64,000 nucleotides of DNA. Source: Anthoceros angustus. Taxonomy: Eukaryota; Plantae; Anthocerotophyta. How positions within the stretch are numbered: the stretch's first letter is position 1; each line of letters begins with the position of its first letter. The notes beneath the pieces are model-generated. The model did not search any database. It was not told the DNA's origin and saw only the letters and a list, made by a program, of their open reading frames with translations. Shown in pieces: positions 1 through 58,682 of the stretch. The stretch is from NCBI GenBank assembly GCA_010909165.1, contig MU008165.1, positions 1,364,001 through 1,428,000 of the forward strand, given 5' to 3'. The position numbers were made by a program, and so were the translations under genes.

Positions 1-445
1 AGCTGGATGGGAACTGCCAGATTACCTGAGAAAGATCATTGTACAGGAAGATCGTCGAAGTCGACCAAAGTTGGTGATATCATGACTGAGGAGGTTAGTT
101 GCCCACCCAGCTTTCCCTGGGTATGCTTTTACGCAGAACCTGGCCGCGAAAGAGGAGCTGGCTGCGTTCTTACTGACATGGGAGTCACACTCCCGTCGTG
201 TCTGTTGTCTCAGAACAAGCTGATAACGGTCAGCCTGAGCATGAAGCTTTGCAAGCAATGGAGCTGATGACGGGTGAGTAACGCTCTTCCGTGCTGAGCT
301 AGCCTCCTTGTGTGTCATCCCGGTCCTCACATTGTACTCCTCCCCGACGACAGATAAGCGAATCAGACACATCCCTGTGGTCGAGAACAAGCAGATGAAG
401 GGCATGGTTTCCATTGGGGATGTCATTCGAGCCATAGTGAAGGAA
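1..445 (+). CDS. CBS-domain protein (CBSX3-like), 3' exons; this copy of the last exon is truncated at 445
   Basis: Spliced peptide RSSKSTKVGDIMTEE|NKLITVS..AMELMT|DKRIRHIPVVENKQMKGMVSIGDVIRAIVKE with GT-AG introns (about 94-213 and 272-353). The sequence departs from the CBS C-terminus after 445. Confidence 0.85.
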
Positions 446-2700: not shown

Positions 2701-3397
2701 TCCTAGATGGTCTCTTTCCATCGTTCTTTCACCTCAATAAATCATCCACGCCTATATAAAACATATATGTTACTATTGCTATTAAACATCACACATTTAT
2801 GGTCAGCTGCAAATACTTTATGCCAGGGCCCATGGAGTATCGGCAGAGGGCAACCGACAAGTGCTCTAGGGTGCAGAGTGGTGAGATTATAGGTGGTGGG
2901 GTCCACCACGGTAAGGTAACCGCGCATTAAACCCCGGACGAATTTCGGTGACCGGGCTTCTTCTTTTAGCGGTTCTTTTTCAGGGAGCCACTAGCAACCC
3001 ACGGTTTACAAGCCGGTCCTGTGGCGGGTTCAGGGCTATATATGTACATATATTTGGTGTATCGGGTTTACTTCATGGTATGTATATATTTGGACGTGTT
3101 ATCTGCGCGTAGCTACAAGCCAAGGCGGTCATGCCACAAGGAAGAAGACATATGGATGGTGGGCCTCCCTGCTTTGGGAGAAGTGCCCATTCATTCTGTA
3201 GGAGTAATAGGCTCTACGGGTTTAGAACGATGCGTGCTGGAGTCTTGATTTTTAGTGGGGAGCCAGGCAACCAGCAAAATATCCTACGCGCCCTTTCCCA
3301 ACTTCAAAAGTTGGTGAGCCTGGAATCCGGGACTGGAGCGCGTTTCAACGTGTCTGAGGGTTTTGTGCTATGTACGTGGCGTCGGTCTGGATTCTAA

Positions 3398-6300
3398 ATG
3401 AAGCAAGCAGCACTCATGGCTGTCAAGTCCGACGGAGAGGAGAGTCTGGAGGATGCCCCAAAGCCCAAGCCCAAAGCTAGCAAGGGCAAAGGCAAAGGCA
3501 AAGGCAAAGGCAAAGGCAAAAGCGACGGCGATGGCGATGGCGATGGCACGTTGAAGCAAAGTAATGCCAATTCTGCTGTTTTTCACCCCTGCTGGGCATC
3601 TTGCTTGCCCAACTCCAACTTGTACATGTTTGTCGTGCAGAATCCCTGCAGAATTTTTCGCGGAGAACAAGAACATCGCAGGTTTCGACAATGTAATTCC
3701 CAGGTCCATCTGTGCTTAATCGATTTCTGGATTTCACGAGGAGCTCCGCGTTGGTTACTGGACATGGATCATCAATCGGGATTAGGGTAGTGGGTGGGAG
3801 GCAGCATGGAGGAGCGAGTAGGGGTAGTGCCAAATTTTACCAATCTGGTGGCGTAATGTCGGCTGCTTCATTTCATGTTGGGAGCACTGCTTGCAAGCAG
3901 CTGTGCCAGGGTCTGCAGCTGCAGAGCTTCCAGGCAGCGGTACTGTGGAGCTCAAGGCGGGTGAGACCACCTATGTATCGTGGAAAAGCTACTGCAGGAT
4001 GCGCAGAAGACAGCAAGCAAGTCGGGTGCTCCGGCAGGTGCCAATCCTGCTTTGGAAGCACGGATTTCTCCTGAGGTGTGCTGCCTGACGCGCTGCATTC
4101 TTGAAGCACGTTCTGGGTGGGATGGCAGCCTGACAGACAGGGAGCGTGTGGATGCTGTAGTATGATGATTTTGAGACCGAGAAAGCGAAAGAGGTTTGTA
4201 CGAACTGGATTGTTTTTTCTGCTGCTTTGAAGGGTTTTGTTTCAAGCTACTAGACTCCTTAAGTATTGTGGTAATTTCCATAGAAACGACTGGCTCGAGA
4301 AGCTCGCGAGCAAGAGAAACAAATCAAGGCTGTGGCAGCAGGCAAGAAGATCAAGGATGCTGGGCAACTGAAACCGGTAAAGGTCGTGGAGAAGCAATGT
4401 TCTTCAAAAGTGACAGTCAAGGTATTTTGAAACCGCTCTTCTGCACAGACTGCATTGTCCTCTAAAGCTCTGGATTCTGGATATGGTTGATTGCTGTATT
4501 TTTTCAAGATCCAGGTTAGTCATCTCCTTGATTCCACGTTTGCAGGATAATGGGCGAGGGATGGCACATGATGACATCCCTAACATGTTTGGACGAGGTG
4601 AACCTTCGTCTCACAAGTATCTTTTCATTTATTGGTGATGTGTGTTCCTTGAAATGTAGCTTTCTGTTCATTGATGATCAAGAGTTGGTAATCTCCGCAA
4701 GCTGTTTTTCACCCCTGCTGGGCATCTTGCTTGCCCAACTCCAACTTGTACATGTTTGTCGTGTGCAGAATCCCTGCAGAATTTTTCGCGGAGAACAAGA
4801 ACATCGCAGGTTTCGACAATGTAATTCCCAGGTCCATCTGTGCTTAATCGATTTCTGGATTTCACGAGGAGCTCCGCGTTGGTTACTGGACATATGCTAA
4901 CTCGGCCTGCAATCTTCTTCAGCCCGGGAAAAGTTTGTACACCACCGTCCGCGAGCTCGTTGAGAATGCCCTGGACTCTGCTGAGGCCATCGCAGTTCTT
5001 CCAGAGATTGAGCTAACAATGTGAGACCATGGGCCCAGTGGAAGTCCTGTTTGCCTAGTACAATCATGGGGCCGTGCTGTATGCCCCTCGTTAATACCGT
5101 TGGTTCTGTGCGGTCAGCGAGGAGCTCAGCAGATCCCAGTTCAACACCTTGATAGGCCTGACAGACAGGAGCGTGTGGATGCTGCATTGTATGATGATTT
5201 TGAGACCGAGAAAGCGAAAGAGGTTTGTACGAACTGGATTGTTTTTTCTGCTGCTTTGAAGGGTTTTGTTTCAAGCTACTAGACTCCTTAAGTATTGTGG
5301 TAATTTCCATAGAAACGACTGGCTCGAGAAGCTCGCGAGCAAGAGAAACAAATCAAGGCTGTGGCAGCAGGCAAGAAGATCAAGGATGCTGGGCAACTGA
5401 AAACCGGTAAAGGTCGTGGAGAAGCAATGTTCTTCAAAGTGACAGTCAAGGTATTTTGAAACCGCTCTTCTGCACAGACTGCATTGTCCTCTAAAGCTCT
5501 GGATTCTGGATATGGTTGATTGCTGTATTTTTCAAGATCCAGGTTAGTCATCTCCTTGATTCCACGTTTGCAGGATAATGGGCGAGGGATGGCACATGAT
5601 GACATCCTAACATGTTTGGACGAGGTGAACCTTCGTCTCACAAGTATCTTTTCATTTATTGGTGATGTGTGTTCCTTGAAATGTAGCTTTCTGTTCATTG
5701 ATGGAAAATGTTTTTCTATTGGGGTACTTGTTTTTTTACAGGAGTGCGAGCGAGCTTATTTGAGATGTCCTCGGTTGGTTCTTTGCAGAATGATTATTTT
5801 GCTGTAGAGAGCTCGAAGTTGAAACATACAGGGTTTTACATCCACAGGGGACCGCTTGCTGGAGTCTTGATTTTTAGTGGGGAGCCAGGCAACCAGCAAG
5901 TGAGATTGGTCACAAATTAGTTTTGGGCAGGGACTGGACATGCGGATCATCAATCGGGATTAGGGTAGTGGGTGTGGGAGGCAGCATGGAGGAGCGAGTA
6001 GGGGGTAGTGCCAAATTTTACCAATCTGGTGGCGTAATGTCGGCTGCTTCATTTCATGTTGGGAGCACTGCTTTGCAAGCAGCCGTGCCAGGGTCTGCAG
6101 CTGCAGAGCTTCCCAGGCAGCGGTACTTCGTGGAGCTCAAGGCGGGTGAGACCACCTATGTATCGTGGAAAAAGCTACTGCAGGATGCGCAGAAGACAGC
6201 AAGCAAGTCGGGTGCTCCGGCAGGTGCCAATCCTGCTTTGGAAGCACGGATTTCTCCCGAGGTGTGCTGCCTGACGCGCTGCATTCTTGAAGCACGTTCT

Positions 6301-9300
6301 GGGTGGGATGGCAGCCTGACAGGTTGTGAACTAACACCTCGAGGGGTTTCATGTCCAGACAGGAGGGTCTGTTGTTGTCAGAGATGAGGAGCAACCTCAA
6401 TCTGGTGCAGACCGGTTCAGAGACGTGATTCAGAAAATTGAGACGCTTTACCGGGTGAGCTACGGTGATTTGGTGTGGGCAGTAAGCGTGTTTGAACAAG
6501 CTTGCCAATGGGGGTTCGTTCGTTGCATGTCCACAGGGTGTCGACAGCGAAGGCGAGGAGTCTGACCCTGTTGATGAACAGTATGACACAGACGATTCAT
6601 TCATTGATGATCAAGAGTTGGTAATCTCCGCAAGCTGTTTTTCTGTGATGAAGTGCTGTCCGGGACCAAGTATGGCCTGAAGCAGACTCGTGGAAAGTTG
6701 GACTTGGCGCCAAAATGGTAAGCCCTGTGCTCCTCCCACACTGACAGTATGCATTTTGGATTTGATAAGTGGTTTTTGGGGACAAGGGCTCTACGTTTTG
6801 AAGTGGCTCACTCATTGAAGCAGTTCAGAACTGTACAAATTTGTGGCCAGCATTCTAGCTGCATGTATAAGGCCTTACTTTCTTTGCACTGTCTGTCTCA
6901 TCTGTTCAGGTCAGAGCCATCCTCCCCTCCTGCACCTGCGCCGAAGAAAAGAAAGCGCAAAGATTCAAAGCAGATATCCAAGGATGTTGCCGAGGGCAAC
7001 TCGACTGATGATGATGCAACTGAAGATGATTTTCCAGAGGATGACACTCCAAAGAGTCTGAAGATCGACCCAGGTGTTCGGATGAAAGTTGCTGCCAGGA
7101 AAGTGCCCGCATCAGGGGGTCCTAAAGGAGGACAAGACACATATGCTGGACACAAAAGCTCTGATACAGGAAAGCAGAGTTACCACAGGAAGGATGCCCA
7201 TTCCAGAAATGATCAGGGTCGTGGAGAAGCAATGTTCTTCAAAGTGACAGTCAAGGTATTTTGAAACCGCTCTTCTGCACAGACTGCATTGTCCTCTAAA
7301 GCTCTGGATTCTGGATATGGTTGATTGCTGTATTTTTTCAAGATCCAGGTTAGTCATCTCCTTGATTCCACGTTTGCAGGATAATGGGCGAGGGATGGCA
7401 CATGATGACATCCCTAACATGTTTGGACGAGGTGAACCTTCGTCTCACAAGTATCTTTTCATTTATTGGTGATGTGTGTTCCTTGAAATGTAGCTTTCTG
7501 TTCATTGATGGGAAAATGTTTTTTCTGTGATGAAGTGCTGTCCGGGACCAAGTATGGCCTGAAGCAGACTCGTGGAAAGTTTGGACTTGGCGCCAAAATG
7601 GTAAGCCCTGTGCTCCCTTTTTGCCCGTTGTCATTTGCAGTAATGATTTCAAGATGGGGAATTAGCCAACGCTGTATGATATGATTTCAGATGCAAAACT
7701 CACCATCTGTAGTAAGTCACCTGTCTTGGCTATATTTCTTCCAGGCACTAATATGGTCAAAGATGAGCACAGGATTGCCCATTGACATACTGAGTGCAAC
7801 CAAGAATCAGAGTTTCATGTCTTTTTGCAAGTTGGACATAGATATTCACAAGTAGGTTGTTGTGAGTCACCTTTCACCTCTCCAAGTCCCCACATGTTTT
7901 AGATTTCAACCACCAGTCGTCAGCTTCTGCGGCGGCAGATGCTTAGTGAAGGAACCCTGACGGCTGGTGCATATCACAGGAATGTGCCCAATATCCATGT
8001 TCATGAAAACGCACCAACAGTGATGGATGGCACGGAGCTGAAATTCAAGTCACAATTGAGGGAAACTGGACAACATACCGTGTGAGTTTTCACTTGCCAT
8101 CAGTGGTGAAGCACTTGTCTCTGTTATTTGCTTATGGCATGTTACCCATCCAACGGGGAAGGAGTCAAGTGGTAAACACTTCGGTCAAGGTTGTTGTGTT
8201 CTGGGTTCGCCTTTATCGACTTGGTAAACTGTAGGCAAGATTTGTCATGTTGGTGAGGGCCGTTTTCCTGGTTTCATCTTGTCTATGACTTCTGTTTGTT
8301 GTACGTAGTTCTGTGGGCAATCCAAAGTGTGTCCTGCAGAGGAGATTTAGAGTCACTTTAACAATGGGCACACATTAGCTGGGCCATAACCATTATGCTG
8401 AGCGTCTTATTGGTTAGTACTTCACATCAAGCAGTGAATGCAGAACTCTTGTGGTATGGTTGTACCTTCAATCAGTCACTTCATGGTATACCAGGTGAAA
8501 TGGGAGAGGAGTTCACTGCAAAACAAACGTGAAAACACTTACGTCCCAGCACATTGTTCGGATCCATCAGCTGTTTAGACAGGCGAAATTTGATGATCCA
8601 AGTGGAGAGGTAGGTCAGGGATGGTCTCTTCGGCTTCACTATCAAACTACTTATGCAAGTGCTTGATGGTTGCAATTTCTTGTACAGTGCCTCAGTCCAG
8701 GGAGAAGAATGAAGGGACGATGCTTGAGAGAGCCATGCAGGACTTGGAGAAAGGGGTTGCAGCAAGTAAGCATTTGTATGTTGTTTGCCAGTTAGGAGCC
8801 AACAGTGATGGATGGCACGGAGCTGAAATTCAAGTCACAATTGAGGGAAACTGGACAACATACCGTGTGAGTTTTCACTTGCCATCAGTGGTGAAGCACT
8901 TGTCTCTGGACGCAGGTGCTGCCCCAGCGTTTGTAAGCAAGTTGCTATGCACTGTGCTGTGATTATCTTGGATGTTCAGTAGAGGTGACTGTCTTACATC
9001 TGCAGTCCAAGATCATCAACTACATGAGACAAATGGCAGTAATCACACCCTACGCTCAGTTTCTCTTCAGCTACATCGGCTCAACTTCTGAGTAAGTCTC
9101 GTGTTCCAGAGAAACTCTCCTGAAAATCCCTGCAAATTTATTTTGTCTTGACATAGCAAACTGGGTTGGTACCTTGGTGAAGCAAAACGTCACAGTCAGG
9201 TTTGCACGCCGAACGAACACCATGCCACCAGCCCCAGTGGAGACCAAGTATCATCCATCTGCTGTGGACTTGTTGCTTATAAAGCGCTTGATAGCAGATA

Positions 9301-12300
9301 CATTGAAGCCGACCCTTGCCCAGTTCCTTCAGCACGAGTTCACAAACATAAGCAAGTCTTATGCTGAGCGTCTTATTAGTACTTCACATCAAGCAGTGAA
9401 TGCAGAACTCTTGTGGTATGGTTGTACCTTCAATCAGTCACTTCATGGTATACCAGGTGAAATGGGAGAGGAGTTCACTGCAAAACAAACGTGAAAACAC
9501 TTACGTCCCAGCACATTGTTCGGATCCATCAGCTGTTTAGACAGGCGAAATTTGATGATCCAAGTGGAGAGGTAGGTCAGGGATGGTCTCTTCGGCTTCA
9601 CTATCAAACTACTTATGCAAGTGCTTGATGGTTGCAATTTCTTGTACAGTGCCTCAGTCCAGCTGGAGAGTACAATTTGCACCTGGGCATCATGAAAGAG
9701 TTGCATCCAGACATGGTCGCAACGCTCCAGAGCAAGTAAGGGCTGAAATTATGTGCAGAGGTATCTGCTTTTGGTCTGGCAGTGTGCCCACCCACAGCAG
9801 AGGGTCAAGAGTCAGAAAAGCCTGGACATTCTGGAGGGAAAAACAAGCGTTTGCCTCGAGATGTTAAGAATAAGCTTGCGAAGGTCGCTAGGCTCTCGGT
9901 AAGTAGTATTACTGGTATGTTGGTTTGTAGACATTAGGAACTTCGGGTACAAGTCATAGGGACTGGTACTCCACGGCTTTGGGAGTAGATAAGTCTACAC
10001 TTGCCACTAGGGCCACTTCCAACATTCGATGTTGTTTTCGGTCTGTAGTCCAAGCAGGGAAGAATTCCAAAAGAGGTGGTCCAAAGGCTCTCACTTATCC
10101 TTGGGGACAAAATGCGTCTGCCAACCTTGAAGGTGAATAGCTTTGAGAATCTCTCAGTACTGGCTTTACCAACACACCATTGTATGCTGCTCATGGTTTT
10201 ACCTGTTGTGCGCAGTACAACTTGAAGAAGATGGTAGAAATGGGAATAACTGCAAATCAAGAAAAGGAAGGGCGACTTCAGAACATCAAGGGGGAAGTTA
10301 CTGAGATGATCAAATGCAGGTTGAAAGCTCAGGTCAGCTCTGAATTTGCAGTGTTGTACACATCTTTGACATCATGAACACATAAGTTCATGAAAAACGC
10401 ACCAACAGTGATGGATGGCACGGAGCTGAAATTCAAGTCACAATTGAGGGAAACTGGACAACATACCGTGTGAGTTTTCACTTGCCATCAGTGGTGAAGC
10501 ACTTGTCTCTGGACGCAGGTGCTGCCCCAGCGTTTGTAAGCAAGTTGCTATGCACTGTGCTGTGATTATCTTGGATGTTCAGTAGAGGTGACTGTCTTAC
10601 ATCTGCAGTCCAAGATCATCAACTACATGAGACAAATGGCAGTAATCACACCCTACGCTCAGTTTCTCTTCAGCTACATCGGCTCAACTTCTGAGTAAGT
10701 CTCGTGTTCCAGAGAAACTCTCCTGAAAATCCCTGCAAATTTATTTTGTCTTGACATAGCAAACTGGGTTGGTACCTTGGTGAAGCAAAACGTCACAGTC
10801 AGGTTTGCACGCCGAACGAACACCATGCCACCAGCCCCAGTGGAGACCAAGTATCATCCATCTGCTGTGGACTTGTTGCTTATAAAGCGCTTGATAGCAG
10901 ATACATTGAAGCCGACCCTTGCCCAGTTCCTTCAGCACGAGTTCACAAACATAAGCAAGTCTTATGCTGAGCGTCTTATTAGTACTTCACATCAAGCAGT
11001 GAATGCAGAACTCTTGTGGTATGGTTGTACCTTCAATCAGTCACTTCATGGTATACCAGGTGAAATGGGAGAGGAGTTCACTGCAAAACAAACGTGAAAA
11101 CACTTACGTCCCAGCACATTGTTCGGATCCATCAGCTGTTTAGACAGGCGAAATTTGATGATCCAAGTGGAGAGGTAGGTCAGGGATGGTCTCTTGAGAC
11201 TCCTCATGCTGGATGTACTGACTGGGGCTTGGTTTTACTCAGGTTCTAAATCTGAGGTATCTGCTTTTGGTCTGGCAGTGTGCCCACCCACAGCAGAGGG
11301 TCAAGAGTCAGAAAAGCCTGGACATTCTGGAGATAATGGCTGAGGAACAGAAGCCTAAGAGACCTCGATTTGATGATGAATCCGAAGAGTTGCTCAAGGA
11401 CGTGATGCACCAAAGGCTCCTACTTATCCTTGGGGACAAAATCGTCTGCCAACTATGAAGGTGAATAGCTTTGAGAATCTCTCAGTACTGGCTTTACCAA
11501 CACACCATTGTATGCTGCTCATGGTTTTACCTGTTGCAGTACAACTTGAAGAAGATGGTAGAAATGGAATAACTGCAAATCAAGAAAAGGAAGGCGACTT
11601 CAGAACATCAAGGGAAGTTACTGAGATGATCAAATGCAGGACAAAATTGGTGTTTTGTGAGCATTGTAAGTACAAAGATTCCTTTTAAAGGGACTGGGAA
11701 GGAATACATTGGAGACGATATACAGGAAATATCTGCTGCCGTGAAGGTACTCATATCTGGTGGAAGGCAGTCGTTGTGGCCGCATTGATGCATGAGGAGC
11801 TCCGCTTGTCCCATTTCTAACATCTTGCTACCAGTCAGCGATACAACAATGTTGTATACAACTGAAATCGAAGATTGTCCGGCAACAAGCAGCTCGTGAT
11901 AGGCAACAACGAAAACGGAATCTGGCCAGGTATGTTCCTGGGAAACAGTCGTCCAGCTTCCGTCGTGTTTGAGAAAGGGCGTTCCTGGCTTGACGTGCTC
12001 ACCGATTCAGGTACATACCAGACGTGTCACGAGCTATCTACAATATTCTGGAGATAATGGCTGAGGAACAGAAGCCTAAGAGACCTCGATTTGATGATGA
12101 ATCCGAAGAGTTGCTCAAGGACGTGATGCACCAAAGGCTGACGGAAGAAATCCTGCACGAAAAGCTTGCAGAGTATGTCAACAAGGTAATGCGGTGCCAT
12201 GGCCATGGCTTTCAGATGTCCCAGCCTTCGCTGCTCAAGAGTACCGCTGCTAACACATGCATCTGCTGCAGGTTGAAAGCTCAGGTCAGCTCTGAATTTG

Positions 12301-14445
12301 CAGTGTTGTACACATCTTTGACATCATGAACACATAAGTTCATGAAACTTCCGAGAGGCTGCATGTGTCTTAGAGGTGTTCCCCGAAACCAACTTTCCTG
12401 TCCCACCCTACTTTTTGCTCATATCAGTGCCCTTTCGCAGGCTTGTGATGGTTCTTCTGATGATTTCCAAGCAAGTTGTGGAGGTCAAGCTTCTGCAAGT
12501 GGTCGATACGAATGGGATCAAGCCACAGAAGATCGCATTTGTGATCTGTATGATTTATATGTGGAGGTTCTGACCGCTTTCCTACATCAGCAGGCTATGT
12601 CATTTTGGTTGCTTCCAAAGAGTCTACCTTCCCTTCTGTACTAATCGTATCTCCATTCTTGTAACTGCAGGGACTTGACGAACATAAAGGTCCAAAACTT
12701 AGGAAGCTCTATGGCGAGGTTTGTGTGACACTTATTATGTAGGAATGTGAAGGACCCTTGAGGGCTCGTGTCTGCTGGGGCCTTTCATAGGATTGTTTAT
12801 TGTGCTTTCTCTATGGTTTGGACTTTGACATGAGGTGCCTTTGGATTACGTTATCTACAGTTGGCAAACTTGTGGCCAGAAGGTTGGATGGACAATGTTG
12901 GAATCAAGCAAGCTGTTGGTCGAGCTAAAATGCGCAAGAAGAGACTGCTAAAAGCCACGAAGGTAGACAGGACTTTCTGTTCAAAGGGAATGTACTCTGA
13001 AGGGCCTTCAGTAGCATCGTCTTAGTTGTTGTGTGGTTGTCTCAGTGAGGTGTCCTGTTCATTTGCTTGTTCCCTTATTTTGCTATGCGGGAGGGCTGCT
13101 CAGAGTGTTCCATTTGGTTTTAAGGCTGTGTGGAAGATGTTCTGATTATTCTCTTTGCTGTAATTTTTAGGTAAGAAGCAATTGGCAACTGTAGGTATTG
13201 TGTTGGTGGTCCGTGCTGTAAGAAGCAACAAAAGAAATTGCTATGCGTCCAGGAGATTATGAATACAGGATCATATTGTACATGGGGCATACATGGATGC
13301 GTTATGCCTGGGTGAATGTATATGTGACCCGCAAAGTTTCTCTTGTCTTGTAGCTGACCATTGCCAGTTGGACATTCGTTTTTCATTGCAATGTTTCTAC
13401 TTGTGGGTATTAGGCACAGAATCGGGAGGAACCAAAGAAAACGTCAAAGGTTCCTTCTGGGTCTGAGAAGCAGCAAAAGGAAGAGAGAGCAATTCCCAAG
13501 AGCGAGCAATCTAGTAAGCCGAAAATTCCTCGTCCAGATAGTGGACAGATTCAGTCTGCAGTGAAAAAGGAGGTGGCATCTAGTGTGAATGAGGAGTTAT
13601 TGAGTTCGAAGGGAGAAAGGAAATTGAAAAGACCTGCCAGCGACCAAATCAATGAGAGTAAACAGATAGAGAAGGCGAAGAGTAGCGTAAATGGCAAAAG
13701 GTTACAGCAGCAGCCGTTGAAGATGACCAAAAAGAGGATGAGCGGGTTGGTTACGTCTGCAGTGAAGAAAAGCAGCTCTTCACGGGCACCTTCAGGCAAG
13801 CTTAATATCAGTACATACCCTTCTTGCAGTCATGATGAATAGGCGTTGCACCTTTTAGCTGTTGAACCGGTCTGAGTCTTGTCTGCCAGTAATTGCTAGC
13901 ATTCAAAACCTATCTGAACGTGCAGTGGACAGCCAATACAAAAGTATGGCTGTCATTTTCTTCATTGTTGAGTGTACTTTAGGTCTCTAGGACAAGGGAC
14001 ACCCCATGACAGTTATGCATGCAGGGGACTTTGTACAGGGTATGTTGTGTACGGCTGTGTTTCAGTTACCGTCTGCTGCAGATAGTCGGACTCAGTTTTT
14101 GAATGAGAACTGTTGGACAATATAGCATTTGGTAATCATATGGTTGGCACAAAGGCTGACGGAAGAAATCCTGCACGAAAAGCTTGCAGAGTATGTCAAC
14201 AAGGTAATGCGGTGCCATGGCCATGGCTTTCAGATGTCCCAGCCTTCGCTGCTCAAGAGTACCGCTGCTAACACATGCATCTGCTGCAGGTTGATTCGGA
14301 AATGGCACTTGAATATGCTGTGCAAAGTGGGATGGTAGGTGCTGTACGGGAAGAGCTCTACCTCCGAGAGCTTGACAGAAACCGACCAGTCGCTGCGGAG
14401 CTTCACAGCTCTGTTTGCGTAGTTAAACTTTTTAGCGATAGGTGA
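3398..14445 (+). CDS. TOP6B: DNA topoisomerase VI subunit B; exons present but fragmented, partly duplicated and interleaved with ubinuclein
   Basis: Exons [144 protein letters not shown] and [14 protein letters not shown]; stop at 14443-14445. Confidence 0.95.
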
Positions 14446-15012
14446 TAACAACAATTCTGTGGTCGTACTTTGGCGTGATCTCAAATTTGTTACCGTCCAA
14501 GATTAGAAGTATATGTCAAGACGCGGGGTTGCTGTTGAAGGAGTGCGCTACATAGCTGTGCAGCTACACTTCAGCTCCTTCAGAACCCACCACTTCCCGA
14601 AAGGGCAAGGGAACTGTCTTCACAGCTCTGTATTTACCAACGTTGTTGAGATGTTCATTTTCTAGCCTGCATCCAGTAAATCGGAGTTAACAAACGGTAT
14701 CCTGTCGTGGACCAGCATTTGAAGTGGACCTTCCACGTTCCAACTCTTTCAAAATTCGACAAAGCAAACACTCGTACCGGAAAAGTTGGGCAGTAGAGTC
14801 TTTAATAACTAGGAAAAGTAGGACCAGCCAGACTGTACTGTGATAACTGGGCTACTAACGGGGACTCTGTTCTTGTTTATGCTGCAGATTCTCAAAAGCC
14901 GCTCAAAAAACAGAAAGCCGCTGAGCAGCAAGTAGCTGCCAAAGCCAGCCAAGCTACTGTCAAAAGCAGCCCCCCACAACCGTCAGATGCTACCGAAGGA
15001 TCCTCGCCGTGA
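3806..15012 (+). CDS. UBN: Ubinuclein (UBN/HPC2-family HIRA-complex subunit); exons interleaved with TOP6B
   Basis: [34 protein letters not shown] motif [15 protein letters not shown]|[50 protein letters not shown]|[14 protein letters not shown] and [19 protein letters not shown] copies at 3806 and 5986; last exon ends EGSSP* at 15012. Confidence 0.88.
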
Positions 15013-22000: not shown

Positions 22001-23155
22001 ATCCACCCCAGAAGCGATGGCAAGGACTCAGTAACTTATATGGAGCAGAGCTTGTGTCTTGCAAGACCTGTGACAGACCCTCCTAACTTCTACCTGCTGG
22101 TCATGCAGGAAACTTTTTAAGCATAACTCACACATGGCAACCCGGGGATGTAGTAAAGGTTGACATCCCAGTTCTGTTGAGGCTGGAGAGGATAAAAGGT
22201 AGTGTACCACATCTGTTCTTTTCTTTCATTCTGTCATCCAGGGAGAAGCATTATTGGTCTCACCAGCGCATGGCTGTTCACGGATTCCTTGTTTCATTGC
22301 TCAGATGATCGACCAGACTACTCATCTCTACATGCAGTATTGTTTGGTCCCTATGTTCTGGCTGGCATGACTACTGGAGACTGGGAGCTTGGAGCTGTAA
22401 ATGCGAGCTTGCCCTCTTCTTGGCTTTTTCCTGTTCCAGAAGCGTATTCCAAGCATCTTTATACCTTCAGTCAGGGGCCATCAACTTATACACCAGGCTC
22501 TGCATCTGATACTGCTACTGATCAGGCTTTTGTGTTGGGCCATAGGGAGGGATGGGCTGCTATGTCCCCAGTACCTTCCCAGGGTACCAATGAAGCGGCC
22601 CAATCCACATTCAGGCTCGTAACCCCTTCAGTGCCTGCTTCCAGCTTTCCCAAAGCTGTATTAGAACAAGACGGAGTTGTCGACGAAGCCAAACCTCTAG
22701 ATGACTGGGTCTCCCTGGAGCTTTACAACCAACCAGGAAAGGTACTGGCCCACACTGGTGCTGACAGCCAGATTGTTGTGGTTGATGGGTCAGGGTCCCA
22801 TGATGTGGGCCAGCCTGATAACGAGCTCAGTAACCATCAGGAAGGCACAGTGTTCCGGTTGCTGCCAGGACTGTCAGGCACAACCAACTGTGTGTCTTTC
22901 GAAGCTGCCAGCTTACCTGGTTGCTTTCTTTCATCCAACCTGAATTCTGGAGATGGATTGTCCATCACACTCCGCTGTGAGCCAGAAGAAGAAGATCCAG
23001 GCTTCAACGCCTCGACAAGCTTCTTTGCTAGCAAAGGCTTGGCTACCTATCACCCCATAAGCTTCATCGCGGAAGGTCCGATGAATCAATTCCTCTTGTT
23101 TCCCATCTCTGCATACAAGGACGAGAGCTACACCACTTACTTTGATCTGTCCTGA
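19048..23155 (+). CDS. Secreted GH127-family glycoside hydrolase (beta-L-arabinofuranosidase-like) with C-terminal AbfB-like domain
   Basis: Signal peptide then KECTN, RAQETNLRYLLMLDVDRLVWSFR, YGGWEEPDSELRGHFVG|HYLSA, WAPYYTIHK, LNEETGGMND, ADYYERALVNGILGIQRG and FWCCYGTG; last exon 22202-23155. Confidence 0.9.
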
Positions 23156-29968: not shown

Positions 29969-30290
29969 CCCTCCCCGGGCGGTGTTGCGCCCTTAGGGGC
30001 TTACGTTACTGTCTGTTCTTTTCTTTTGATAGAAAAAGCTTCACCCCCTTCCCCTTGCTGTTAGGAAAAAGCTCTAACAAAATATGATAAGGAAGACTAG
30101 TGGAAGTAGTAGCTGCTCGATCCCACAAAAAGCTTCCACGGGCCTGGGATCTAGAGTGCGATTCCATATCCATAGAATCGACTACGTGCACCACGTCCCG
30201 TCGAGGGATGTAAAGGCTGTATGACTTGCAGCATAGCAAAATGTGTCACGTGGCTTCCTTGGACTTTGCATTACAACTTCCAAAACATGG

Positions 30291-30675
30291 ACAAGACAAG
30301 ACAAGACAAGACAAGACAAGATAAGATAAGACAAGACAAGACAAGACAAGACAAGACAAGATAAGACAAGACAAGACAAGACAAGACAAGACAAGACAAG
30401 ACAAGACAAGACAAGACAAGACAAGACAAGACAAGACAAGACAAGATAAGACAAGACAAGACAAGACAAGACAAGACAAGACAAGACAAGACAAGACAAG
30501 ACAAGACAAGACAAGACAAGACAAGACAAGACAAGACAAGACAAGACAAGACAAGACAAGACAAGACAAGACAAGACAAGACAAGACAAGACAAGACAAG
30601 ACAAGACAAGACAAGACAAGACAAGACAAGACAAGACAAGACAAGACAAGACAAGACAAGACAAGACAAGACAAG
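30291..30675. repeat. (ACAAG)n pentanucleotide microsatellite, 77 units
   Basis: 385 bp of acaag, with ataag variants at 30321, 30326, 30361 and 30446. Confidence 0.99.
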
Positions 30676-37834: not shown

Positions 37835-39970
37835 CTAGACGACCTCCTTCTCCAGTCTCAACACAGCCATGAAGGCATCTTGAGGGACTTCAACCCTTCC
37901 CAGAGATTTCATCCTCTTCTTGCCCTCTGCCTGCTTCTTCAACAGCTTCTTTTTCCTAGTTATATCACCACCATAGCACTTCGCCAAAACATCCTTACGC
38001 ATAGCTGCGATGGCCTCGCTTGCGATGACTTTGGTACCTATGCAAGCTTGGATAGGGATTTTGAACAGCTGTCGAGGAATGAGTTCCTTCAGTTTCTGAG
38101 TCAAGGCTCTGCCCACGTTGTAGGCCTTGTCCTTGTGGACGATGCAGGCCAAAGGGTCCACAATCTCGGCGTTGATGAGGATATCCAGTCTCACCAAGTC
38201 GCTCTCACGGTACCCGATCAGTGAGTACTCCATGCTGGCATAGCCTTTGGACCTGGACTTTAGCTGATCAAAGAAATCTCCCACCATCTCAGCCAGCGGC
38301 AGGTCATAAGTGATGGAGGCCCTGTTCTCCGTCACGTACTTCATCTCTTTGAAAACACCTCGCCTGTCCTGAGCAAGTTCCATGAGAGGACCGATGTACT
38401 CCTTTGGTGTGATCATGTCGATCTTGATGTAGGGTTCCTCAAGCGCCTTTCGCTTTGTGGAATCCGGCAGCATGGAAGGGTTGGAACATTCCGTCACCTC
38501 GCCGTCCGCCAACAAAACTCTGTACACAACACTCGGAGCTGTTGTGATAAGATTTAGGTTGTACTCCCTTTCCAGCCTCTCCTGGACGATCTCCATGTGC
38601 AGCAACCCAAGAAACCCACATCGGAAACCAAACCCCATGGCACTCGACGTTTCCGGCTCGAACTTGAGAGCAGCATCGTTCAGCTGCAGCTTCTCCAACG
38701 CCTCCCGCAATTCCGTGAACTGATCGGCGTCCACCGGGAACAGCCCGCAGAAGACCATGGGTGTCGCTTCTAGGTACCCCGGAAGCGCCTTCTCAGCCTT
38801 CCTGGCTGCGTTAGTGATGGTATCACCAACCCTCGCATCCGCCACTGACCTGATAGAAGCCGCCAGGTAACCCACCTCCCCCGCGTACAGCTCCTTCACC
38901 TGCAACTGCGTGGGAGACAAGACCCCAATCTCATCCACTTGATACTCCTTGCCACTGGCCATGAACTGCACCTTGTCACCTTGCTTCAGGCTGCCGTCAA
39001 CCAGCCTGAAATACACAATCACTCCTCTGTAAGCATCGTAGTAGCTGTCAAAAATGAGAGCCCTCAGAGGCAGCTGTGAGGTATCCTTGGGAGCCGGCAC
39101 CTTCTCCACAATAGCCTCCAGAATATCCTGTATCCCTATCCCTTCCTTGGCGGAGCACAGAATGGCATCCGTGCAATCCAGGCCCACAATGTCCTCAATT
39201 TCCTGCTGCACTCGCTCGGGATCAGCCCCCGGCAAATCAATCTTGTTCAGCACTGGAATAATCTCCAGGTTGTTCTCCATGGCCAGATACACATTGGCCA
39301 GAGTCTGAGCCTCCACCCCCTGCGAAGCATCCACCACTAGCAGAGCCCCCTCACAGGCTGCCAAGGACCGGGAAACCTCATACGAGAAATCCACGTGCCC
39401 GGGCGTGTCGATGAGGTTGAGGCAATAGGCGTGCCCATCCTTGGCTACGTACCGCATTCGAGCAGCCTGCAGCTTAATTGTGATGCCCCGCTCCCTCTCC
39501 AAATCCATGTTGTCCAGAAACTGCTCTTTCATGTCCCGATCCGACACTGTCCCGGTACTCTGCAGAAGCTTGTCCGCCAAAGTGGATTTACCGTGGTCTA
39601 TGTGGGCGATGATGGAGAAGTTCCTGATCCTGGAAATGGGCACCTTGGACAGCCGGTCCTTGCCAGCTTCGATGGCCTTCTGCTGCTGCTGCTGCCGTTC
39701 CTCTTGCACCACCTCCACAGCCTGCGCCCGGCACACAAGCTTAGAAGCCCGCCGCGGGCGGCGCAGCGCAGAAGAGCCCTGCTGCAGCCTTGCCCAGGGC
39801 GAGCTCCTCCTGGGGATGGGCAGGCTCCGGCTGACAGCCAAGGAAGTGCTGCAGGAGCTGGAGTCGCCCTCCAAGCCCCTGCCGCCAATCCTCCTAACGC
39901 CATCGCAGCTCAGGGCTCCTGCCATCACATCCCTCGTCGTCGCCCCGGTGAGGCTTCGGAGAGCCATCAC
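37835..39970 (-). CDS. cpLEPA: Plastid translation factor LepA/EF4 (GUF1-like), single exon, 711 aa with transit peptide
   Basis: [48 protein letters not shown] and the C-terminal [31 protein letters not shown]. Confidence 0.97.
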
Positions 39971-45545: not shown

Positions 45546-47588
45546 ATCGCAATATAATAGTTTTTGGGGGGAGTTTTGTGAACAAGTAGGTGATTAAGAA
45601 AAACCTAACCATTTTAAAGGTGTAAAGGAAAATCCAGATCACATCCCTGAGCTTGTGCACAATCTATGCATCATCATATAATAGATGAGAAGTTAGAAGA
45701 ATGATCAAGCTTGGAATTATACCAAGAGGATAGCTATCTTTATAAGATCATAAAATAAATTGTACATTATGCTTATTAGATTGTAAGTATTTAATCAATT
45801 ATTCTTTTTAAAGACTTTTAAAGTTAAAAAGTTTGTAGCTCGGGGTTAGATTATAGCGAGGGTTATTATTGAGGTGAAAAAACGATGGGAAAAGCCCATC
45901 TAGGAGGGGACAACCAGAGGGGACCAGGGTTATTATTGTATGATTCCTCATTAGTACATTTGTTTGTACATAGTCTCACTCTCGATAGAAAAAGCTGAGC
46001 AGGGGGTATCAGCCCACTTACAGCCAAAGAGAGTGTGGAGCAACTTTTGCTGACGGACTAGCCGGGGCATACTTATAACCAAATGTCGATGTAGTACTAG
46101 AGTTCATTCCATAGGGAATGGACTCTTGCTTTTTCTGCCTACGCTCCACAACTTGTGCTTTTTCTGCCTAAGCTCCACGGACTTCATCATGTTGGGTCTG
46201 GCGGCTTTATGGGAAGGTCTGGTGGGTTGCGCCTCTGGTCTGTCGAGTTGCTGAGTGGTACACGCCTAGGTTTCGCGGTTTCTGTTACTATTATTTTTGT
46301 GACTGCTGCTGCATCATTGAAACACCAAAAGGGAACTCCTAGCTACTAGAGATGATGACCAGCCCAGAATGATGACCTCTATCACTTGGACGTAGCCATA
46401 TCCCAAGCCATATCCTCTTCCCTAGCTAGCTGCATGCACACACACCTCTACAAACTCATATTTTTATGGCATGCCCGTTTGGGCCACAATACGTGTTTTT
46501 TACACGTGATTATGCAAGTATTTGTTTTGAGCTTATGGTTTTTTTTTTTCTTGAGACTTATGGTTTTGTTTTTTTTTGTAGGCACTTGCTAGTTAGAATT
46601 TATTTGTAATATTTCTTGAACGCAATTATCAACTTTCGAAAAAGTTGGTTAAAGAATTATGGCTTCCTATCGTTTTTCTCCAAGTCTTGAGAGAACTTTA
46701 TGGGGAAAAAAATTGTTGATTCAAGTTCATTGATAACCCTTTTCAAAGAGTCCTCAACTGGCGCTTTGATATTAATATGCAATAGGTTTGTGACAAAGCA
46801 AATTTTTTTTTTCAGGTGCACAATGCCATTGCTGCGATGGCAGGATGCGGCTGAATTTCTGGATCGAGTAATGCAATCATTGCGAGCTAAGTGGAATATT
46901 TTGCATGAAAGAGTTCAACTTATAAATAGGGAAGTTGCACCCCCAAGATACTTGTTTTCACCTTGAGGGTTCTACTAAGAGGATTATGATCTGCACAAAG
47001 TGGGGATATAAGGTAGATTTTTCAATATTCTTTATTAGGACTGTTTACAGTAACTAGTAGGTTAATGAATTAACATTTGTGCATTTGCGCAGATTCTGAA
47101 TGAAGTGTAACTTTTCATCATCCTACCATTGGCGATTCCACTTGAGAATGGTAGAATAGTAAGAAGAGTGTTATTTTCAGTGAAATTTTTATATTTTGTT
47201 GAATTAAGCCTAACTCTTTAGTGGATGTGATATGTCCTTTAGTTTGCGAAACTATTTTTCCAAGGGGATTGTAAATGGAGTCGAATGTCGGAATTGCACC
47301 CATCATCAAGTACAACAATCGTCAGGAGATTGAGATCTCCGGAGCAAAATGTGGTTGGGTTAAAGTTGGGTTAAAGATGCACTCCCGGTTTTTGACAGCA
47401 TGGCCAGAAAGTGACATAGAATTAATTTCTTCATTGCATAGCAAAAGCTTGGACATGAGACGCTTGTTGTGTGGGGACACATGGAGCTGGCTCAGAGAGA
47501 TTTTATTCAGGTGAAAAAACGATGGGAAAAGCCCATCTAGGAGGGGACAACCAAAGGCTGGCTAGGTATGTCACTTTGGGGCCGGACC

Positions 47589-48102
47589 CAACAATCACAA
47601 CGTGGGCCAGCCTGATAACGAGCTCAGACACCATCAGGAAGGCACAGTGTCCCGGATGCTGCCAGGACTGGCAGTTTCATCCAACCTGAATCCAGATCGA
47701 TATGCACCGTCAATCACACTTGTGCGAGCCGGAAGAAGACGATACAGGCTTCAACGCCTCAACAAACTTCCTGGCTAGAAACGGTTCTGGCTACAACTCA
47801 TTCACCAGCTCACCCTAAACCCTAATACTATACAACATAACAAGAGGAGGGCACAACAATCACAACGTGGGCCAGCCTGATAACGAGCTTAGACACCATC
47901 AGGAAGGCACAGAGTCCCGGATGCTGCCAGGACTGGCATTTCATCCAACCTGAATTCTCGAGATGCACTGTCACTCACACTTGTGTGAGCCAGAAAAAGA
48001 AGATACAGGCTTTAACGCCTCAACAAACTTCCTGGCTAGTAACGGTTCTGGCTACAACTCATTCACCAGCTCACCCTAAAACCTAATACTATACAACCTA
48101 AC
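47589..48102 (+). pseudogene. Two tandem 265-bp units, each holding a deleted fragment of the GH127 last exon
   Basis: gtgggccagcctgataacgagctcag..ccatcaggaaggcacag..tttcatccaacctgaat..caggctt(c/t)aacgcctc matches 22805-23045. Both units share the same internal deletion and end in ccctaaa(c/a)cctaa. Confidence 0.85.
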
Positions 48103-48151
48103 ATCCGCCACCTTGAATGTACAGTGCAGCAAGAAACATAGTATCAAAACT

Positions 48152-52069: not shown

Positions 52070-55000
52070 ATGGAGGCTGGGCAGGGTCGTCAAGATGAAG
52101 ATCCTGAGCGCAAGAAGAAGAAGGAGGAGAAGGTGCGGCCGGCAGCTGCTGCTGACCTGTCGCAGAGCCGCCATTTGTGTGTTGTGTGAGGCAGGATCTT
52201 GTCTCCCTGATTGATTCAGATTCCAACATTGCCTACAGGCCAGGGAGAAGGAGTTGAAGAAGCAGAAAGCTGCCCAGAAGGCAGAAGCAGCAAAAGCTGC
52301 CAAGGCCGCACCAGATGGGTCAGGGAAGAAGAAGGATACCAAGGCCAAGCGGCCTGCTGAGGAGGTGGCTGATCCTCCCACGCCGGCTGGCCAGAAGAAG
52401 CAGCTGGCGGCTCTCATGGCCCCGTCCTACAGCCCTAAGGCCGTGGAGAGGAGGTCAGCTTTGGCATGCAGCTCTAGTGATGCAAATCGTAGCTGCTCGC
52501 CTGCAGTTGTGATTTTCATGCTTCGGTTGTTGATGCAGTTGGTATGAGTGGTGGGAGGAATCGGGATTCTTTGTGGCCGACAACACCAGTACCAAGCCGC
52601 CGTTTGTGATTGTAAGCATTGTCCTCACTTCTGCTTAGTAGGCTGTGGAAGCAAGTATGTGGCTCAGCCCAAGCATGGTTCCTACTGCAGGTAGTACCCC
52701 CGCCAAACGTTACTGGTGCCCTGCACATTGGGCATGCCTTAACAGCTGCCATCCAGGTAAGAGATGATACCTTCTGGTTTTGGAACAGAAGCAGTGTCTG
52801 AGCTCACTGGTTGGTTCACCAACTTCTTTTCGGCTCTCTTAGGATTCCGTGTCAGATGGCACAGAATGAGAGGTTACAATACGCTTTTGGGTTCCAGGCA
52901 TGGACCACGCTGGCATTGCAACTCAGGTATCAACGTTCGCTTTCCTACTGCTGGTTCCACCAGTGAAGTGTAAGGTTTCAGGGTTTAAGTTCTGTGGTTT
53001 CAGGGTTAGTGTAGGGTTTTCAGGGTTTAAGGGATGTCAGAGCCAGGTCCCTTTCCAACCATCTGCAACCTTGACTACTGCAGGTAGTTGTGGAGAAGAA
53101 GATCATGAGAGAAAGTAATCTGACAAGGCATGACATTGGGAGGGAAAAGTTCGAGGCAAAGGTATTCAGCTTTCAAACTGTGATACCCTGTGACCTGAAG
53201 AAGGAAATGTATCCTGAACTATGGTTTGTGGCAGGTATGGAATGGAAGCAAGTATGTGGCTCAGCCCAAGCATGGTTCCTACTGCAGGTAGTACCCCGCC
53301 AAACGTTACTGGTGCCCTGCACATTGGGCATGCCTTAACAGCTGCCATCCAGGTAAGAGATGATACCTTCTGGTTTTGGAACAGAAGCAGTGTCTGAGCT
53401 CACTGGTTGGTTCACCAACTTCTTTTCGGCTCTCTTAGGATTCCGTGTCAGATGGCACAGAATGAGAGGTTACAATACGCTTTTGGGTTCCAGGCATGGA
53501 CCATGCTGGCATTGCAACTCAGGTACCAACGTTCGCTTTCCACTGCTGGTTCCACCAGTGAAGTGTAAGGTTTCAGGTTTAAGTTCTGTGGTTTCAGGGT
53601 TAGTGTAGGGTTTCAGGGTTTAAGGGATGTCAGAGCCAGGTCCCTTTTCAACCATCTGCAACCTTGACTACTGCAGGTAGTTGTGGAGAAGAAGATCATG
53701 AGAGAAAGTAATCTGACAAGGCATGACATTGGGAGGGAAAAGTTTGAGGCAAAGGTATTCAGCTTTCAAACTGTGATACCCTGTGACCTGAAGAAGGAAA
53801 TGTATCCTGAACTATGGTTTGTGGCAGGTATGGAATGGAAGCAAGTATGTGGCTCAGCCCAAGCATGGTTCCTACTGCAGGTAGTACCCCCGCCAAACGT
53901 TACTGGTGCCCTGCACATTGGGCATGCCTTAACAGCTGCCATCCAGGTAAGAGATGATACCTTCTGGTTGGTGACAGAAGCAGTAGCTGAGGGCTCACTG
54001 GTTCACCAACTTCTTTTCGGCTCTCTTAGGATTCCGTGGTGAGATGGCACAGAATGAGAGGTTACAATACACTTTGGGTTCCAGGCATGGACCACGCTGG
54101 CATTGCAACTCAGGTATCAACGTTCGCTTTCCTACTGCTGGTTCCACCAGTGAAGTGTAAGGTTTCAGGGTTTAAGTTCTGTGGTTTCAGGGTTAGTGTA
54201 GGGTTTTCAGGGTTTAAGGGAAGGAGCCAGGTCCTTTTCAACCATCTGCAACCTTGACTACTGCAGGTAGTTGTGGAGAAGAAGATCATGAGAGAAAGTA
54301 ATCTGACAAGGCATGACATTGGGAGGGAAAAGTTCGAGGCAAAGGTATTCAGCTTTCAAACTGTGATACCCTGTGACCTGAAGAAGGAAATGTATCCTGA
54401 ACTATGGTTTGTGGCAGGTATGGGAATGGAAGAAGCAATATGGTGATACCATCTCGAGACAGCAACGGAAAGTGGGGGCCTCGCTTGACTGGTCTAGAGA
54501 AGTATGTCTCTTTCATATCATCTCGTCATGCATGTCATTGGTAGCTAGTGGTTTTGGAGAGTGATACGCCAGAGCATGCTGCAGTGTTTTACAATGGATG
54601 CCAAGTTGTCCAAAGCTGTAACTGAAGCCTTCGTACGCCTCTATGACGAGGGCCTGATCTACAGGTTAGTGTTGTCACCTCTAAATCAGCGCCAACTGTC
54701 ATGTCCATTTGTTTTGCGTATGCTTTCTCTGCTTGTGCCTTACAGTGGTGCACTGCAGGGATGATCGACTTGTAAACTGGGATTGTACCCTTAAGACTGC
54801 AATTTCGGATATAGAGGTACCTTGTTGCAGCCTTTTCAAACAATATTCTCCTTACTGTTCGTGACTTTCTCCCTACACGTGTATATCTTTAAGGTGGACT
54901 CGCATTTTGATCCAATGGGGCTGACCATTTTTGACCCTCCATCAGGTAGAGTATAAGGACCTGGAGAAGAGGGAAGCAATTAAGGTACCAGGTTATGATG

Positions 55001-58301: not shown

Positions 58302-58682
58302 GCATGGCGCAGCCAGCTTTGTTTCTTGTGGGTGTGACTCTTGACTGGAGATTCGTGCCAGTACCATTCTTCACGGGCGGGCGAATGAGCCTTGTCCACA
58401 GTTTTGTTCCCGCTCGGAATGACGACGGACTCGATTTGTTTTCTCTTAAATCTCTTGCAGCATCCCAAGCCAATGGCAGCGTGTGGGGCCGAGCAGCATT
58501 ATCTGTTTCAAAGCACGTCCTGTCGTTGGTGCATTCCCAGATCAACTAAACAGAGACCCGGGCGTGGTGACTGTTAATCATGGCCTAATCCGACACATTC
58601 CTAAGCTTTGCATGAACGCCTCCAATGGCCGACCGTGCCCGCAATCCACACTCGCTCTGCGCTAGGGAATGCGGCCAGCAGG

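Follow-up and report, generated by a model that had tools for sequence, protein, structure and literature searches.

Two unrelated genes, TOP6B and a HUN-domain/ubinuclein gene, are interleaved in a public genome assembly of the hornwort Anthoceros angustus (GCA_010909165.1), and we conclude from the sequence that this mosaic is most probably an artefact of assembly or consensus building, a reading to which we give a probability of about 0.85. The mosaic occupies positions 3232-14445 (+) of a 64,000-nt stretch of contig MU008165.1 (positions 1,364,001-1,428,000, forward strand), which we refer to as the window. TOP6B is called gene A and the HUN-domain/ubinuclein gene is called gene B in the description of all segments, or tiles. 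An artefact is favored because the joins obey a hard 9-nt limit and lie on the same strand, the two genes alternate strictly, re-entry is bounded at about 1 kb, the copies differ in the manner of read errors, and a part of TOP6B is missing. The first-pass annotation of this DNA had also preferred an artefact over real template switching, and every testable feature supports that preference.

The mosaic comprises 23 tiles with 21 A-to-B or B-to-A switches, a higher count than the 15 or more alternating same-strand blocks recognized initially, and the order of the tiles bears out the earlier impression that each gene advances roughly 5' to 3'. Blocks present in two or three copies make up 6227 of the 11214 bases (55%), every one in direct orientation. 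When 3232-14445 was compared with itself, 18 duplicate pairs were obtained (94.6-100% identity, all direct), in agreement with the claim that many blocks are duplicated. No inverted duplicates were found in the window self-comparison, where the sole inverted matches were chance palindromes of 14-16 nt. One interval of about 1 kb is present three times: 3575-4710 is an A/B mosaic of it, 4701-5715 consists of A alone and 5716-6643 of B alone. The tiles are as follows, with peptides given by their length in letters where they serve as landmarks.

3232-3277 (+), B fragment: duplicates 5854-5899, an upstream/5' exon of the HUN gene, and precedes the start of TOP6B
3278-3765 (+), A: TOP6B start; ATG at 3398, Lys/Gly- and Asp/Gly-rich N-terminus, intron, exon with a 16-letter peptide
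3757-4136 (+), B: copy of 5933-6322; 7 small deletions break the frame; 9-nt entry word at 3757
4128-4676 (+), A: copy of 5156-5703; 9-nt entry word at 4128
4667-4710 (+), B: 44-nt copy of 6600-6643 (FIDDQEL, HUN exon); 10-nt words at 4667 and 4701
4701-5715 (+), A: backward jump of 1001 nt, with re-entry at the equivalent of 3575; unbroken GHKL ATPase exons follow (from a 17-letter peptide to DNGRGM)
5716-6643 (+), B: unbroken, from upstream region to HUN-domain exon; Pfam HUN match in 6486-6677
6638-6733 (+), A: copy of 7520-7616; exon with a 17-letter peptide
6734-7216 (+), B: single-copy intron and acidic/KKRKRK exon
7217-8123 (+), A: backward jump of 397 nt, continuing as far as the GNWTTYR exon; 1 nt is lost at 8006, which breaks an exon with a 14-letter peptide
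8124-8392 (+), single-copy tile: putatively B, by exclusion only
8393-8705 (+), A: forward jump of 450 nt from the exit point; copy of 9359-9669
8706-8798 (+), single-copy tile: probably a B exon (12-letter peptide), with no Pfam match
8799-9757 (+), A: backward jump of 871 nt; transducer-domain exons to HPDMVAT; the next 65-90 TOP6B residues are missing
9758-10395 (+), B: exons with a 17-letter peptide, then the following ones
10386-11195 (+), A: backward jump of 974 nt (10-nt word at 10386); repeats 7999-8123 and 8909-9592, with 794 nt 100% identical
11196-11332 (+), B: backward jump of 696 nt; the part at 11254-11332 repeats 9758-9836
11324-11418 (+), A: copy of 12045-12139; 9-nt words at 11324 and 11410
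11410-11640 (+), B: error-rich copy of 10081-10320, with 9 indels in 240 nt
11641-12276 (+), A: TOP6B again, from a 21-letter peptide (Top6B residues 410-440, PDB 1z59) to a 10-letter peptide
12267-14149 (+), B: re-entry at the 10-nt word at 12267, within 6 nt of the B exit; the 3' exons of the HUN gene follow
14150-14445 (+), A: backward jump of 145 nt; last TOP6B exon (beginning with a 13-letter peptide) and stop codon

The assignment of gene A to TOP6B was borne out by the names of its matches and by Top6B in the PDB. A word search with segment 9096-9491 returned matches named DNA topoisomerase 6 subunit B (E down to 3e-27). Against PDB Top6B there was a clear match at residues 210-275 (E 3e-4) and a weak one at residues 410-440 (E 0.25). 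A 14-letter TOP6B motif and KQTRGKFG are both present, as is similarity to the GHKL ATPase and transducer domains. The same search listed 112 TOP6B fragments, the best of which were only 78-83% identical; therefore none of them comes from the same species. Topo VI is reported to be ubiquitous among plants (PMC11302465). At this locus the TOP6B coding sequence is neither complete nor uninterrupted. Several exons are frameshifted, and the stretch from HPDMVAT to the 10-letter peptide (about 65-90 residues) occurs in none of the six frames of the window. The missing piece of the transducer domain corresponds roughly to Top6B residues 345-410 of PDB 1z59.

For gene B, the proposed ubinuclein identity is upheld by a HUN domain (PF08729) at 6486-6677, which scored 30.7 bits against a Pfam cutoff of 26.9 (E = 3e-7). 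The match is limited to profile positions 6-29 of 52, since the exon stops at that point. The ubinuclein middle domain (PF14075, UBN_AB) gave a faint signal of only 11.3 bits against a cutoff of 25 at 12834-13022 (profile positions 194-206), with exons scanned singly. The Pfam scans were run on stop-free exon segments, as whole mechanical ORFs yielded noise only. When the B exon segment 6722-7261 was used as the query of a word search, no match was obtained. Exact-product look-ups for six ORFs of the window returned no record, and these blanks carry no weight; a single scan of metagenome contigs for exact 25-nt matches found nothing. The host, a land plant, has introns of the ordinary kind and a GC content of 45-50%, and no part of the window resembles human sequence. 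Elsewhere in the window lies an intact LepA/GUF1 ORF, for which the closest sequences among the 120 top-scoring matches listed were 81-86% identical (a Logan contig of SRR33208241; Marchantia, Riccia and Sphagnum).

At all eight junctions where both source contexts are visible, and which are therefore measurable, the switch occurs on a maximal shared word, meaning that the flanking bases on both sides differ between the two source contexts. The eight words reported by the first-pass annotation, and the narrow length range claimed for them, were all recovered: four are of 9 nt and four are of 10 nt.

3757 (+), 9 nt: source contexts 4885 and 5933
4128 (+), 9 nt: source contexts 5156 and 6314
4667 (+), 10 nt: source contexts 5694 and 6600
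4701 (+), 10 nt: source contexts 3575 and 6634
10386 (+), 10 nt: source contexts 7999 and 12338
11324 (+), 9 nt: source contexts 9828 and 12045
11410 (+), 9 nt: source contexts 10081 and 12131
12267 (+), 10 nt: source contexts 10315 and 14285

When 3.8 kb of A were compared with 4.3 kb of B, shared words of at least 9 nt numbered 87 in direct and 61 in inverted orientation. Finding a 9-10 nt word at a given breakpoint is not chance, because only these 87 were available. Shorter words common to both genes are plentiful, with 206 at 8 nt, 747 at 7 nt and 2801 at 6 nt. Under the best smooth exponential preference for length, the probability that all eight junctions fall on 9 or 10 nt is 0.007, and the likelihood of the four-and-four split is 0.0015, as compared to 0.03-0.09 for a hard 9-nt cutoff. 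The likelihood ratio in favor of a hard 9-nt minimum is thus about 20-60, which is not overwhelming as it rests on eight measurable junctions. Despite the 61 inverted words, no piece of the mosaic is inverted (P = 0.014 over the 8 measured junctions; 8e-6 if 22 are counted, a round figure made up of the 21 switches and the left edge).

The choice of partner and the distance travelled are constrained as well. All 21 switches are between A and B, and none occurs within one gene (0/21). Words of at least 9 nt were available for both kinds of jump (33 intragenic within 1 kb and 47 intergenic within 1.3 kb), so that a blind choice among them would give only A-B switches with a chance of about 0.59^21 = 1.5e-5, by hand arithmetic from the word counts. 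Measured within each gene, the displacements are +262, +277, +450, +244, -1001, -974, -928, -871, -696, -499, -397, -145 and -6 nt. In every within-gene jump, re-entry is therefore no more than about 1.0 kb from the exit (maximum 1001 nt), and four of the jumps cluster at 871-1001 nt. The words used sit nearer to register than random words do (permutation p = 0.012).

Over 4146 aligned columns, the copies differ by 32 indel events of 1-4 nt versus 3 substitutions. The earlier description of these differences as indel-only was nearly right: indels dominate, but the 3 substitutions mean that it does not hold strictly. In some tiles the indel level is 1-4%. Conserved exons are frameshifted differently from copy to copy. 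An exon with a 17-letter peptide is intact at 4546 and 7380 and frameshifted at 5574; one with a 14-letter peptide is intact at 10386 and frameshifted at 7999; and in another, also with a 14-letter peptide, CA is missing at 4158 in one copy while G is missing at 5168 in the other. We lean, on these sequence comparisons, towards the view that the copy differences are errors of the sequencing type rather than mutations. The LepA ORF mentioned above, 2136 nt long, is free of frameshifts, and in a genuine 597-nt tandem repeat at 52.6-54.4 kb substitutions and gaps are about equal in number (15 versus 17). The indel pattern alone is not discriminating, because real young duplications would likewise escape short-read polishing.

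How such a mosaic might be written can be sketched. Sequence of the TOP6B and HUN/ubinuclein loci was probably mixed into one stretch of a contig layout. In the scheme that we propose, successive units of that layout, each roughly 1 kb long, would then be joined pairwise. Where neighboring units belong to the same gene, merging would be seamless. Where they belong to different genes, the stitcher may take the sole “overlap” on offer, an exact seed of at least 9 nt within an overlap zone of about 1 kb. Stitching of this kind could yield five features of the locus, namely same-strand joins of 9-10 nt, A-B alternation, the bound of about 1 kb, repeated stretches and dropped stretches. Short-read polishing would subsequently fail in the duplicated stretches, leaving nanopore-type indels behind.

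The first-pass annotation had suggested a small-k de Bruijn or graph consensus step as the origin. The preference for an artefact stood up, but a free walk on a pooled small-k graph fits poorly: such a walk should also jump within a gene, and 0 of 21 switches do so despite 33 intragenic words within 1 kb. Pairwise stitching of layout units therefore fits better than a walk on a pooled graph. The A. angustus genome was assembled from Nanopore reads with wtdbg-1.2.8, followed by Pilon and SSPACE (PMC7027989); its genomic run is SRR9696346 and its RNA-seq run SRR9662965. Other software was used for the assemblies of A. agrestis and A. punctatus. The consensus k-mer of wtdbg-cns quoted in other projects is 13 or 15, a value that does not explain joins of 9-10 nt.

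On the other hand, the joins could be real, and replication in the germline would then have switched template some 21 times in series between the TOP6B and HUN/ubinuclein loci, each switch primed by microhomology, as in MMBIR/FoSTeS or a process like chromoanasynthesis. We consider this improbable. There is microhomology at every measurable join, and duplications are interleaved with deletions, like those of MMBIR products (PMC2621351). However, the joins here are never shorter than 9 nt and none is inverted, and there is no physical rationale for strict alternation with re-entry within 1 kb between two separate templates. The copy-specific frameshifts, moreover, are typical of reads, with 32 indels to 3 substitutions, and a rearrangement of this kind would destroy both conserved genes, with the transducer core of TOP6B lost. 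Two further biological routes were discarded. For a tandem array of A-B units trimmed by deletions, one would have to assume 11 or more identical 10-kb units and 21 separate deletions, every one on a 9-10 nt word, and RNA-templated copy-choice was rejected as the introns are retained.

It could also be speculated that a chimera arose in vitro, as a physical molecule made by whole-genome or PCR amplification during library preparation, of which one read became the backbone of the contig. Polymerase jumping in amplification uses short 3' microhomologies and would leave no substitutions between copies, and the indel level of 1-4% in some tiles would suit a consensus built from very few reads. Chimeras of amplification usually carry few jumps per molecule, however, and many of these are inverted, so that 21 jumps within 11 kb, at two loci only and without a single inversion, would be highly atypical. 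The methods reported for A. angustus mention no amplification (PMC7027989). We regard this origin as even less probable than a real rearrangement.

If the mosaic is an artefact, a public plant reference genome holds stretches in which genes have been scrambled, duplicated and partly lost through software, and the TOP6B and ubinuclein-like gene models at the MU008165.1 locus are untrustworthy. The signature could be used as a filter, one that combines joins solely in direct orientation with a sharp lower limit of 9 nt, jumps no longer than about 1 kb and copies that differ by indels alone. Should the joins be real after all, for which we see little chance, loci of this hornwort would have been rebuilt by a long series of same-strand template switches at 9-10 nt of homology, with two templates held in register. 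This would be a replication or repair process without a described counterpart, and a striking new mode of rearrangement hitting two conserved single-copy genes of chromatin and topology.

Among known systems, the scrambled germline genes of ciliates consist of segments joined at short “pointer” repeats, with genes interwoven. The A. angustus locus resembles them in having interleaved pieces of different genes and short repeated words at the joins. It differs in that its duplicates are near-identical and carry read-type errors, and in that each word links two unrelated genes rather than consecutive segments of one gene; nothing here suggests programmed unscrambling, and we rejected this comparison as an explanation. 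With regard to MMBIR/FoSTeS, we know of no case with 21 alternations between two genes in which register is kept within 1 kb. The likeness to these events (chromoanasynthesis) lies in serial switches, microhomology at the joins and a mixture of duplications and deletions (PMC2621351). On the other hand, MMBIR junctions have 2-5 bp of microhomology in human and 2-15 bp in E. coli, as compared to 9-10 only at this locus, and inverted segments, common there, are absent here (PMC2621351). Although we found no published description of the exact 9-10 nt signature, the locus is most like the mosaic or chimeric consensus and false duplications of noisy long-read assemblies, with which it shares a fixed minimal join word, a single strand, offsets limited to about 1 kb, the repetition of some stretches two or three times and the dropping of others, and copies that differ by indels.

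The interval 3232-14445 of the window, in which a TOP6B gene (A) and a HUN-domain (HPC2/ubinuclein) gene (B) on the same (+) strand are interleaved, is most probably not a real arrangement but an artefact of assembly, judging from the sequence. Self-comparison revealed 18 pairs of near-identical blocks (43-794 nt, 94.6-100% identity), all direct, while inverted matches were limited to 14-16 nt palindromes at chance level. Blocks present in two or three copies make up 55% of the interval (6227 of 11214 bases). From translations in the three forward frames together with the map of duplicates, we counted 23 tiles (single pieces of A or B), alternating between the genes through 21 switches; two tiles (8124-8392 and 8706-8798) were assigned to B by exclusion. 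The first-pass annotation had described at least 15 alternating blocks, many of them duplicated, and both points held, the first being an understatement. A ~1-kb interval occurs in three consecutive versions: first mixed from A and B (3575-4710), next entirely A (4701-5715) and last entirely B (5716-6643). Introns are kept in both genes, so the sequence is genomic and not cDNA; the window as a whole has the short introns and 35-60% GC of land-plant nuclear DNA, and none of the sequence is human. The edges of the mosaic, before 3232 and after 14445, lack defining duplicates, and the right end had earlier been placed at 15012.

The genes were identified by similarity and domain searches with each exon taken singly. 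The A segment at 9096-9491 matched 112 protein fragments (E down to 3e-27), given as DNA topoisomerase 6 subunit B where the source names them, and it aligns to residues 210-275 of Sulfolobus Top6B, for which a structure is solved. The segment at 11630-11785 aligns weakly to residues 410-440 (E 0.25). The GHKL and transducer motifs (28 residues in all, and STKIPF) were all found in A, and in its N-terminus (3470-3545) a simple repeat encodes first a (Gly-Lys)n and then an (Asp-Gly)n run. By homology, then, gene A is TOP6B. The segment of B at 6486-6677 scored 30.7 bits against Pfam HUN (cutoff 26.9) and 12834-13022 faintly matched the end of the ubinuclein middle domain, which identifies B by its domains as a HUN-domain (HPC2/ubinuclein) gene. 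Parts of both are lost. The TOP6B stretch between HPDMVAT (~9736) and a 10-residue motif (~11650) occurs in none of the six frames anywhere in the 64-kb window; by solved structures it corresponds to about residues 345-410, within the transducer domain. The remainder of the HUN domain past FIDDQEL is not visible. A true mosaic would leave both genes dead at this locus. According to PMC11302465, Topo VI is ubiquitous in plants.

The window holds several other repeats and open reading frames:

Other features of the window
311-445 and 2045-2179: two identical 135-nt stretches in direct orientation, offset by 1734 nt, with no source contexts visible for the edges; perhaps a further product of faulty joining
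2677-2756, 45852-45929 and 47502-47557: dispersed repeat of ~55-80 nt, 84-96% identical, with the 2.7-kb copy in the opposite orientation to the others; perhaps a miniature transposon
22805-23046 and 47589-48103: linked members of a second repeat family
30290-30675: simple tandem repeat of ~390 nt, self-matching at offsets stepping 5-15 nt
37835-39970 (-): LepA/GUF1, a chloroplast-type translation factor; best matches listed 81-86% identical (a Logan contig of SRR33208241, then Marchantia, Riccia and Sphagnum)
52646-54435: tandem repeat, three copies of a ~597-nt unit, 96-97% identical
58608-60197 (+): 529-codon ORF with a TTG start, from a mechanical ORF list, in a GC-rich stretch

Over 4146 aligned columns, copies within the mosaic show 32 indel events (1-4 nt each) and 3 substitutions; the earlier description of the differences as indel-only was therefore nearly, but not strictly, correct. 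The changes are biased to deletion and often lie within short homopolymers. Copies of one conserved exon are damaged in different ways. A 17-residue sequence of the ATPase exon is intact at 4546 and 7380 and is frameshifted by one missing C at 5574. A 14-residue exon sequence is intact at 10386 and lacks one A at 7999, where the damaged copy is the one that adjoins the upstream part of its exon; in another 14-residue sequence, copied at 4128 and 5156, the former copy lacks CA and the latter G. Seven deletions set the B copy at 3757-4136 apart from its counterpart, which is a single open frame of 169 codons. These differences have the character of read-type errors and not of mutations, a reading supported by two controls. 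The LepA/GUF1 ORF runs through 2136 nt and 711 codons as a single exon with no frameshift, and in the 597-nt-unit repeat at 52.6-54.4 kb substitutions about equal gaps (15 versus 17 per 1.2 kb), so that this repeat looks genuine, unlike the mosaic copies. The most economical explanation is that polishing with short reads succeeded in single-copy sequence and failed where sequence was written repeatedly. Real, very young duplications would escape polishing too, however, and the error pattern alone is not decisive.

The annotation had placed eight of the joins on shared words of 9-10 bp, and a base-by-base check bore this out in every case: four junctions (3757, 4128, 11324 and 11410) overlap by 9 nt and the other four (4667, 4701, 10386 and 12267) by 10 nt. 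All eight words are maximal, the flanking bases differing between the two source contexts. These are the junctions with both contexts visible (about 13 others have a single source context in the window), and they form an unbiased sample because junction detection is independent of overlap length. For comparison, maximal words common to A (3.8 kb) and B (4.3 kb) were counted by script on the rebuilt visible parts.

Maximal words shared by A and B, by length
4 nt: 40634
5 nt: 10890
6 nt: 2801
7 nt: 747
8 nt: 206
9 nt: 69
10 nt: 16
11 nt: 2

Under a smooth length preference (weight c^L), P for eight of eight junctions at 9 or 10 nt does not exceed 0.007 whatever the value of c, and the best likelihood for the 4+4 split is 0.0015, against 0.03-0.09 for a hard cutoff at 9 nt. 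A process taking the longest available homology would likewise favor long words, but should have used the 11-mers and some 8-mers. The likelihood ratio of ~20-60 lends moderate support to a digital length threshold, moderate because only eight junctions were measured.

Orientation, alternation and displacement show further regularities. Words of at least 9 nt were available in 61 inverted and 87 direct cases, yet all 23 tiles are direct. The probability of this is 0.014 over the eight junctions measured and 8e-6 over 22, a rounded total made up of the 21 switches and the left edge. All 21 switches lead from one gene to the other. With 33 such words within genes (up to 1 kb) and 47 between them (up to 1.3 kb), a blind process would yield that series with a probability of ~1.5e-5 (0.59^21). 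In each gene's own coordinates the re-entry point lies at most ~1.0 kb from the last exit, with forward jumps of +262, +277, +450 and +244 and backward jumps of -1001, -974, -928, -871, -696, -499, -397, -145 and -6. The words used are nearer to register than randomly drawn ones (permutation p = 0.012).

Word lengths, orientation, alternation and bounded jumps thus favor the artefact that the annotation had preferred, in a refined form. Its proposed small-k graph is the weaker part: a free walk on a pooled de Bruijn graph fits less well because jumps within a gene would be expected too, and none of the 21 switches is of that kind. We infer instead that consecutive layout units (~1 kb pieces of a long-read assembly layout) were stitched pairwise. 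Units from the same gene would merge invisibly, whereas an A-unit next to a B-unit could "overlap" only through a chance exact seed of at least 9 nt, sought within an expected overlap zone of ~1 kb. Joins would then sit on 9-10 nt words, in a single orientation since units are oriented beforehand, would be visible only between A and B, and would be displaced by no more than ~1 kb; an upstream seed would repeat a stretch and a downstream seed would lose one. Such stitching would account for all the regularities together. Two loci could have entered one layout through a chimeric read or a false assembly-graph node. The program wtdbg-cns expects an overlap of ~1 kb when it joins units. It has been run elsewhere with -k 13 or -k 15, so its k parameter leaves the 9-nt minimum unexplained. 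[quoted passage not shown] Apart from a quality warning for this genome, an assembly artefact here is of low interest.

A real rearrangement by serial template switching (MMBIR/FoSTeS) is improbable, and a chimeric molecule formed in vitro appears somewhat less probable still. Register kept between two unrelated templates has no physical explanation under template switching, and the mosaic departs from the known process on both of its hallmarks. Microhomologies at MMBIR/FoSTeS joins measure 2-5 bp in human and 2-15 bp in E. coli; the products hold both inverted and direct segments (PMC2621351). The mosaic, in contrast, uses words of 9-10 nt only at its measured junctions and consists of direct segments only.
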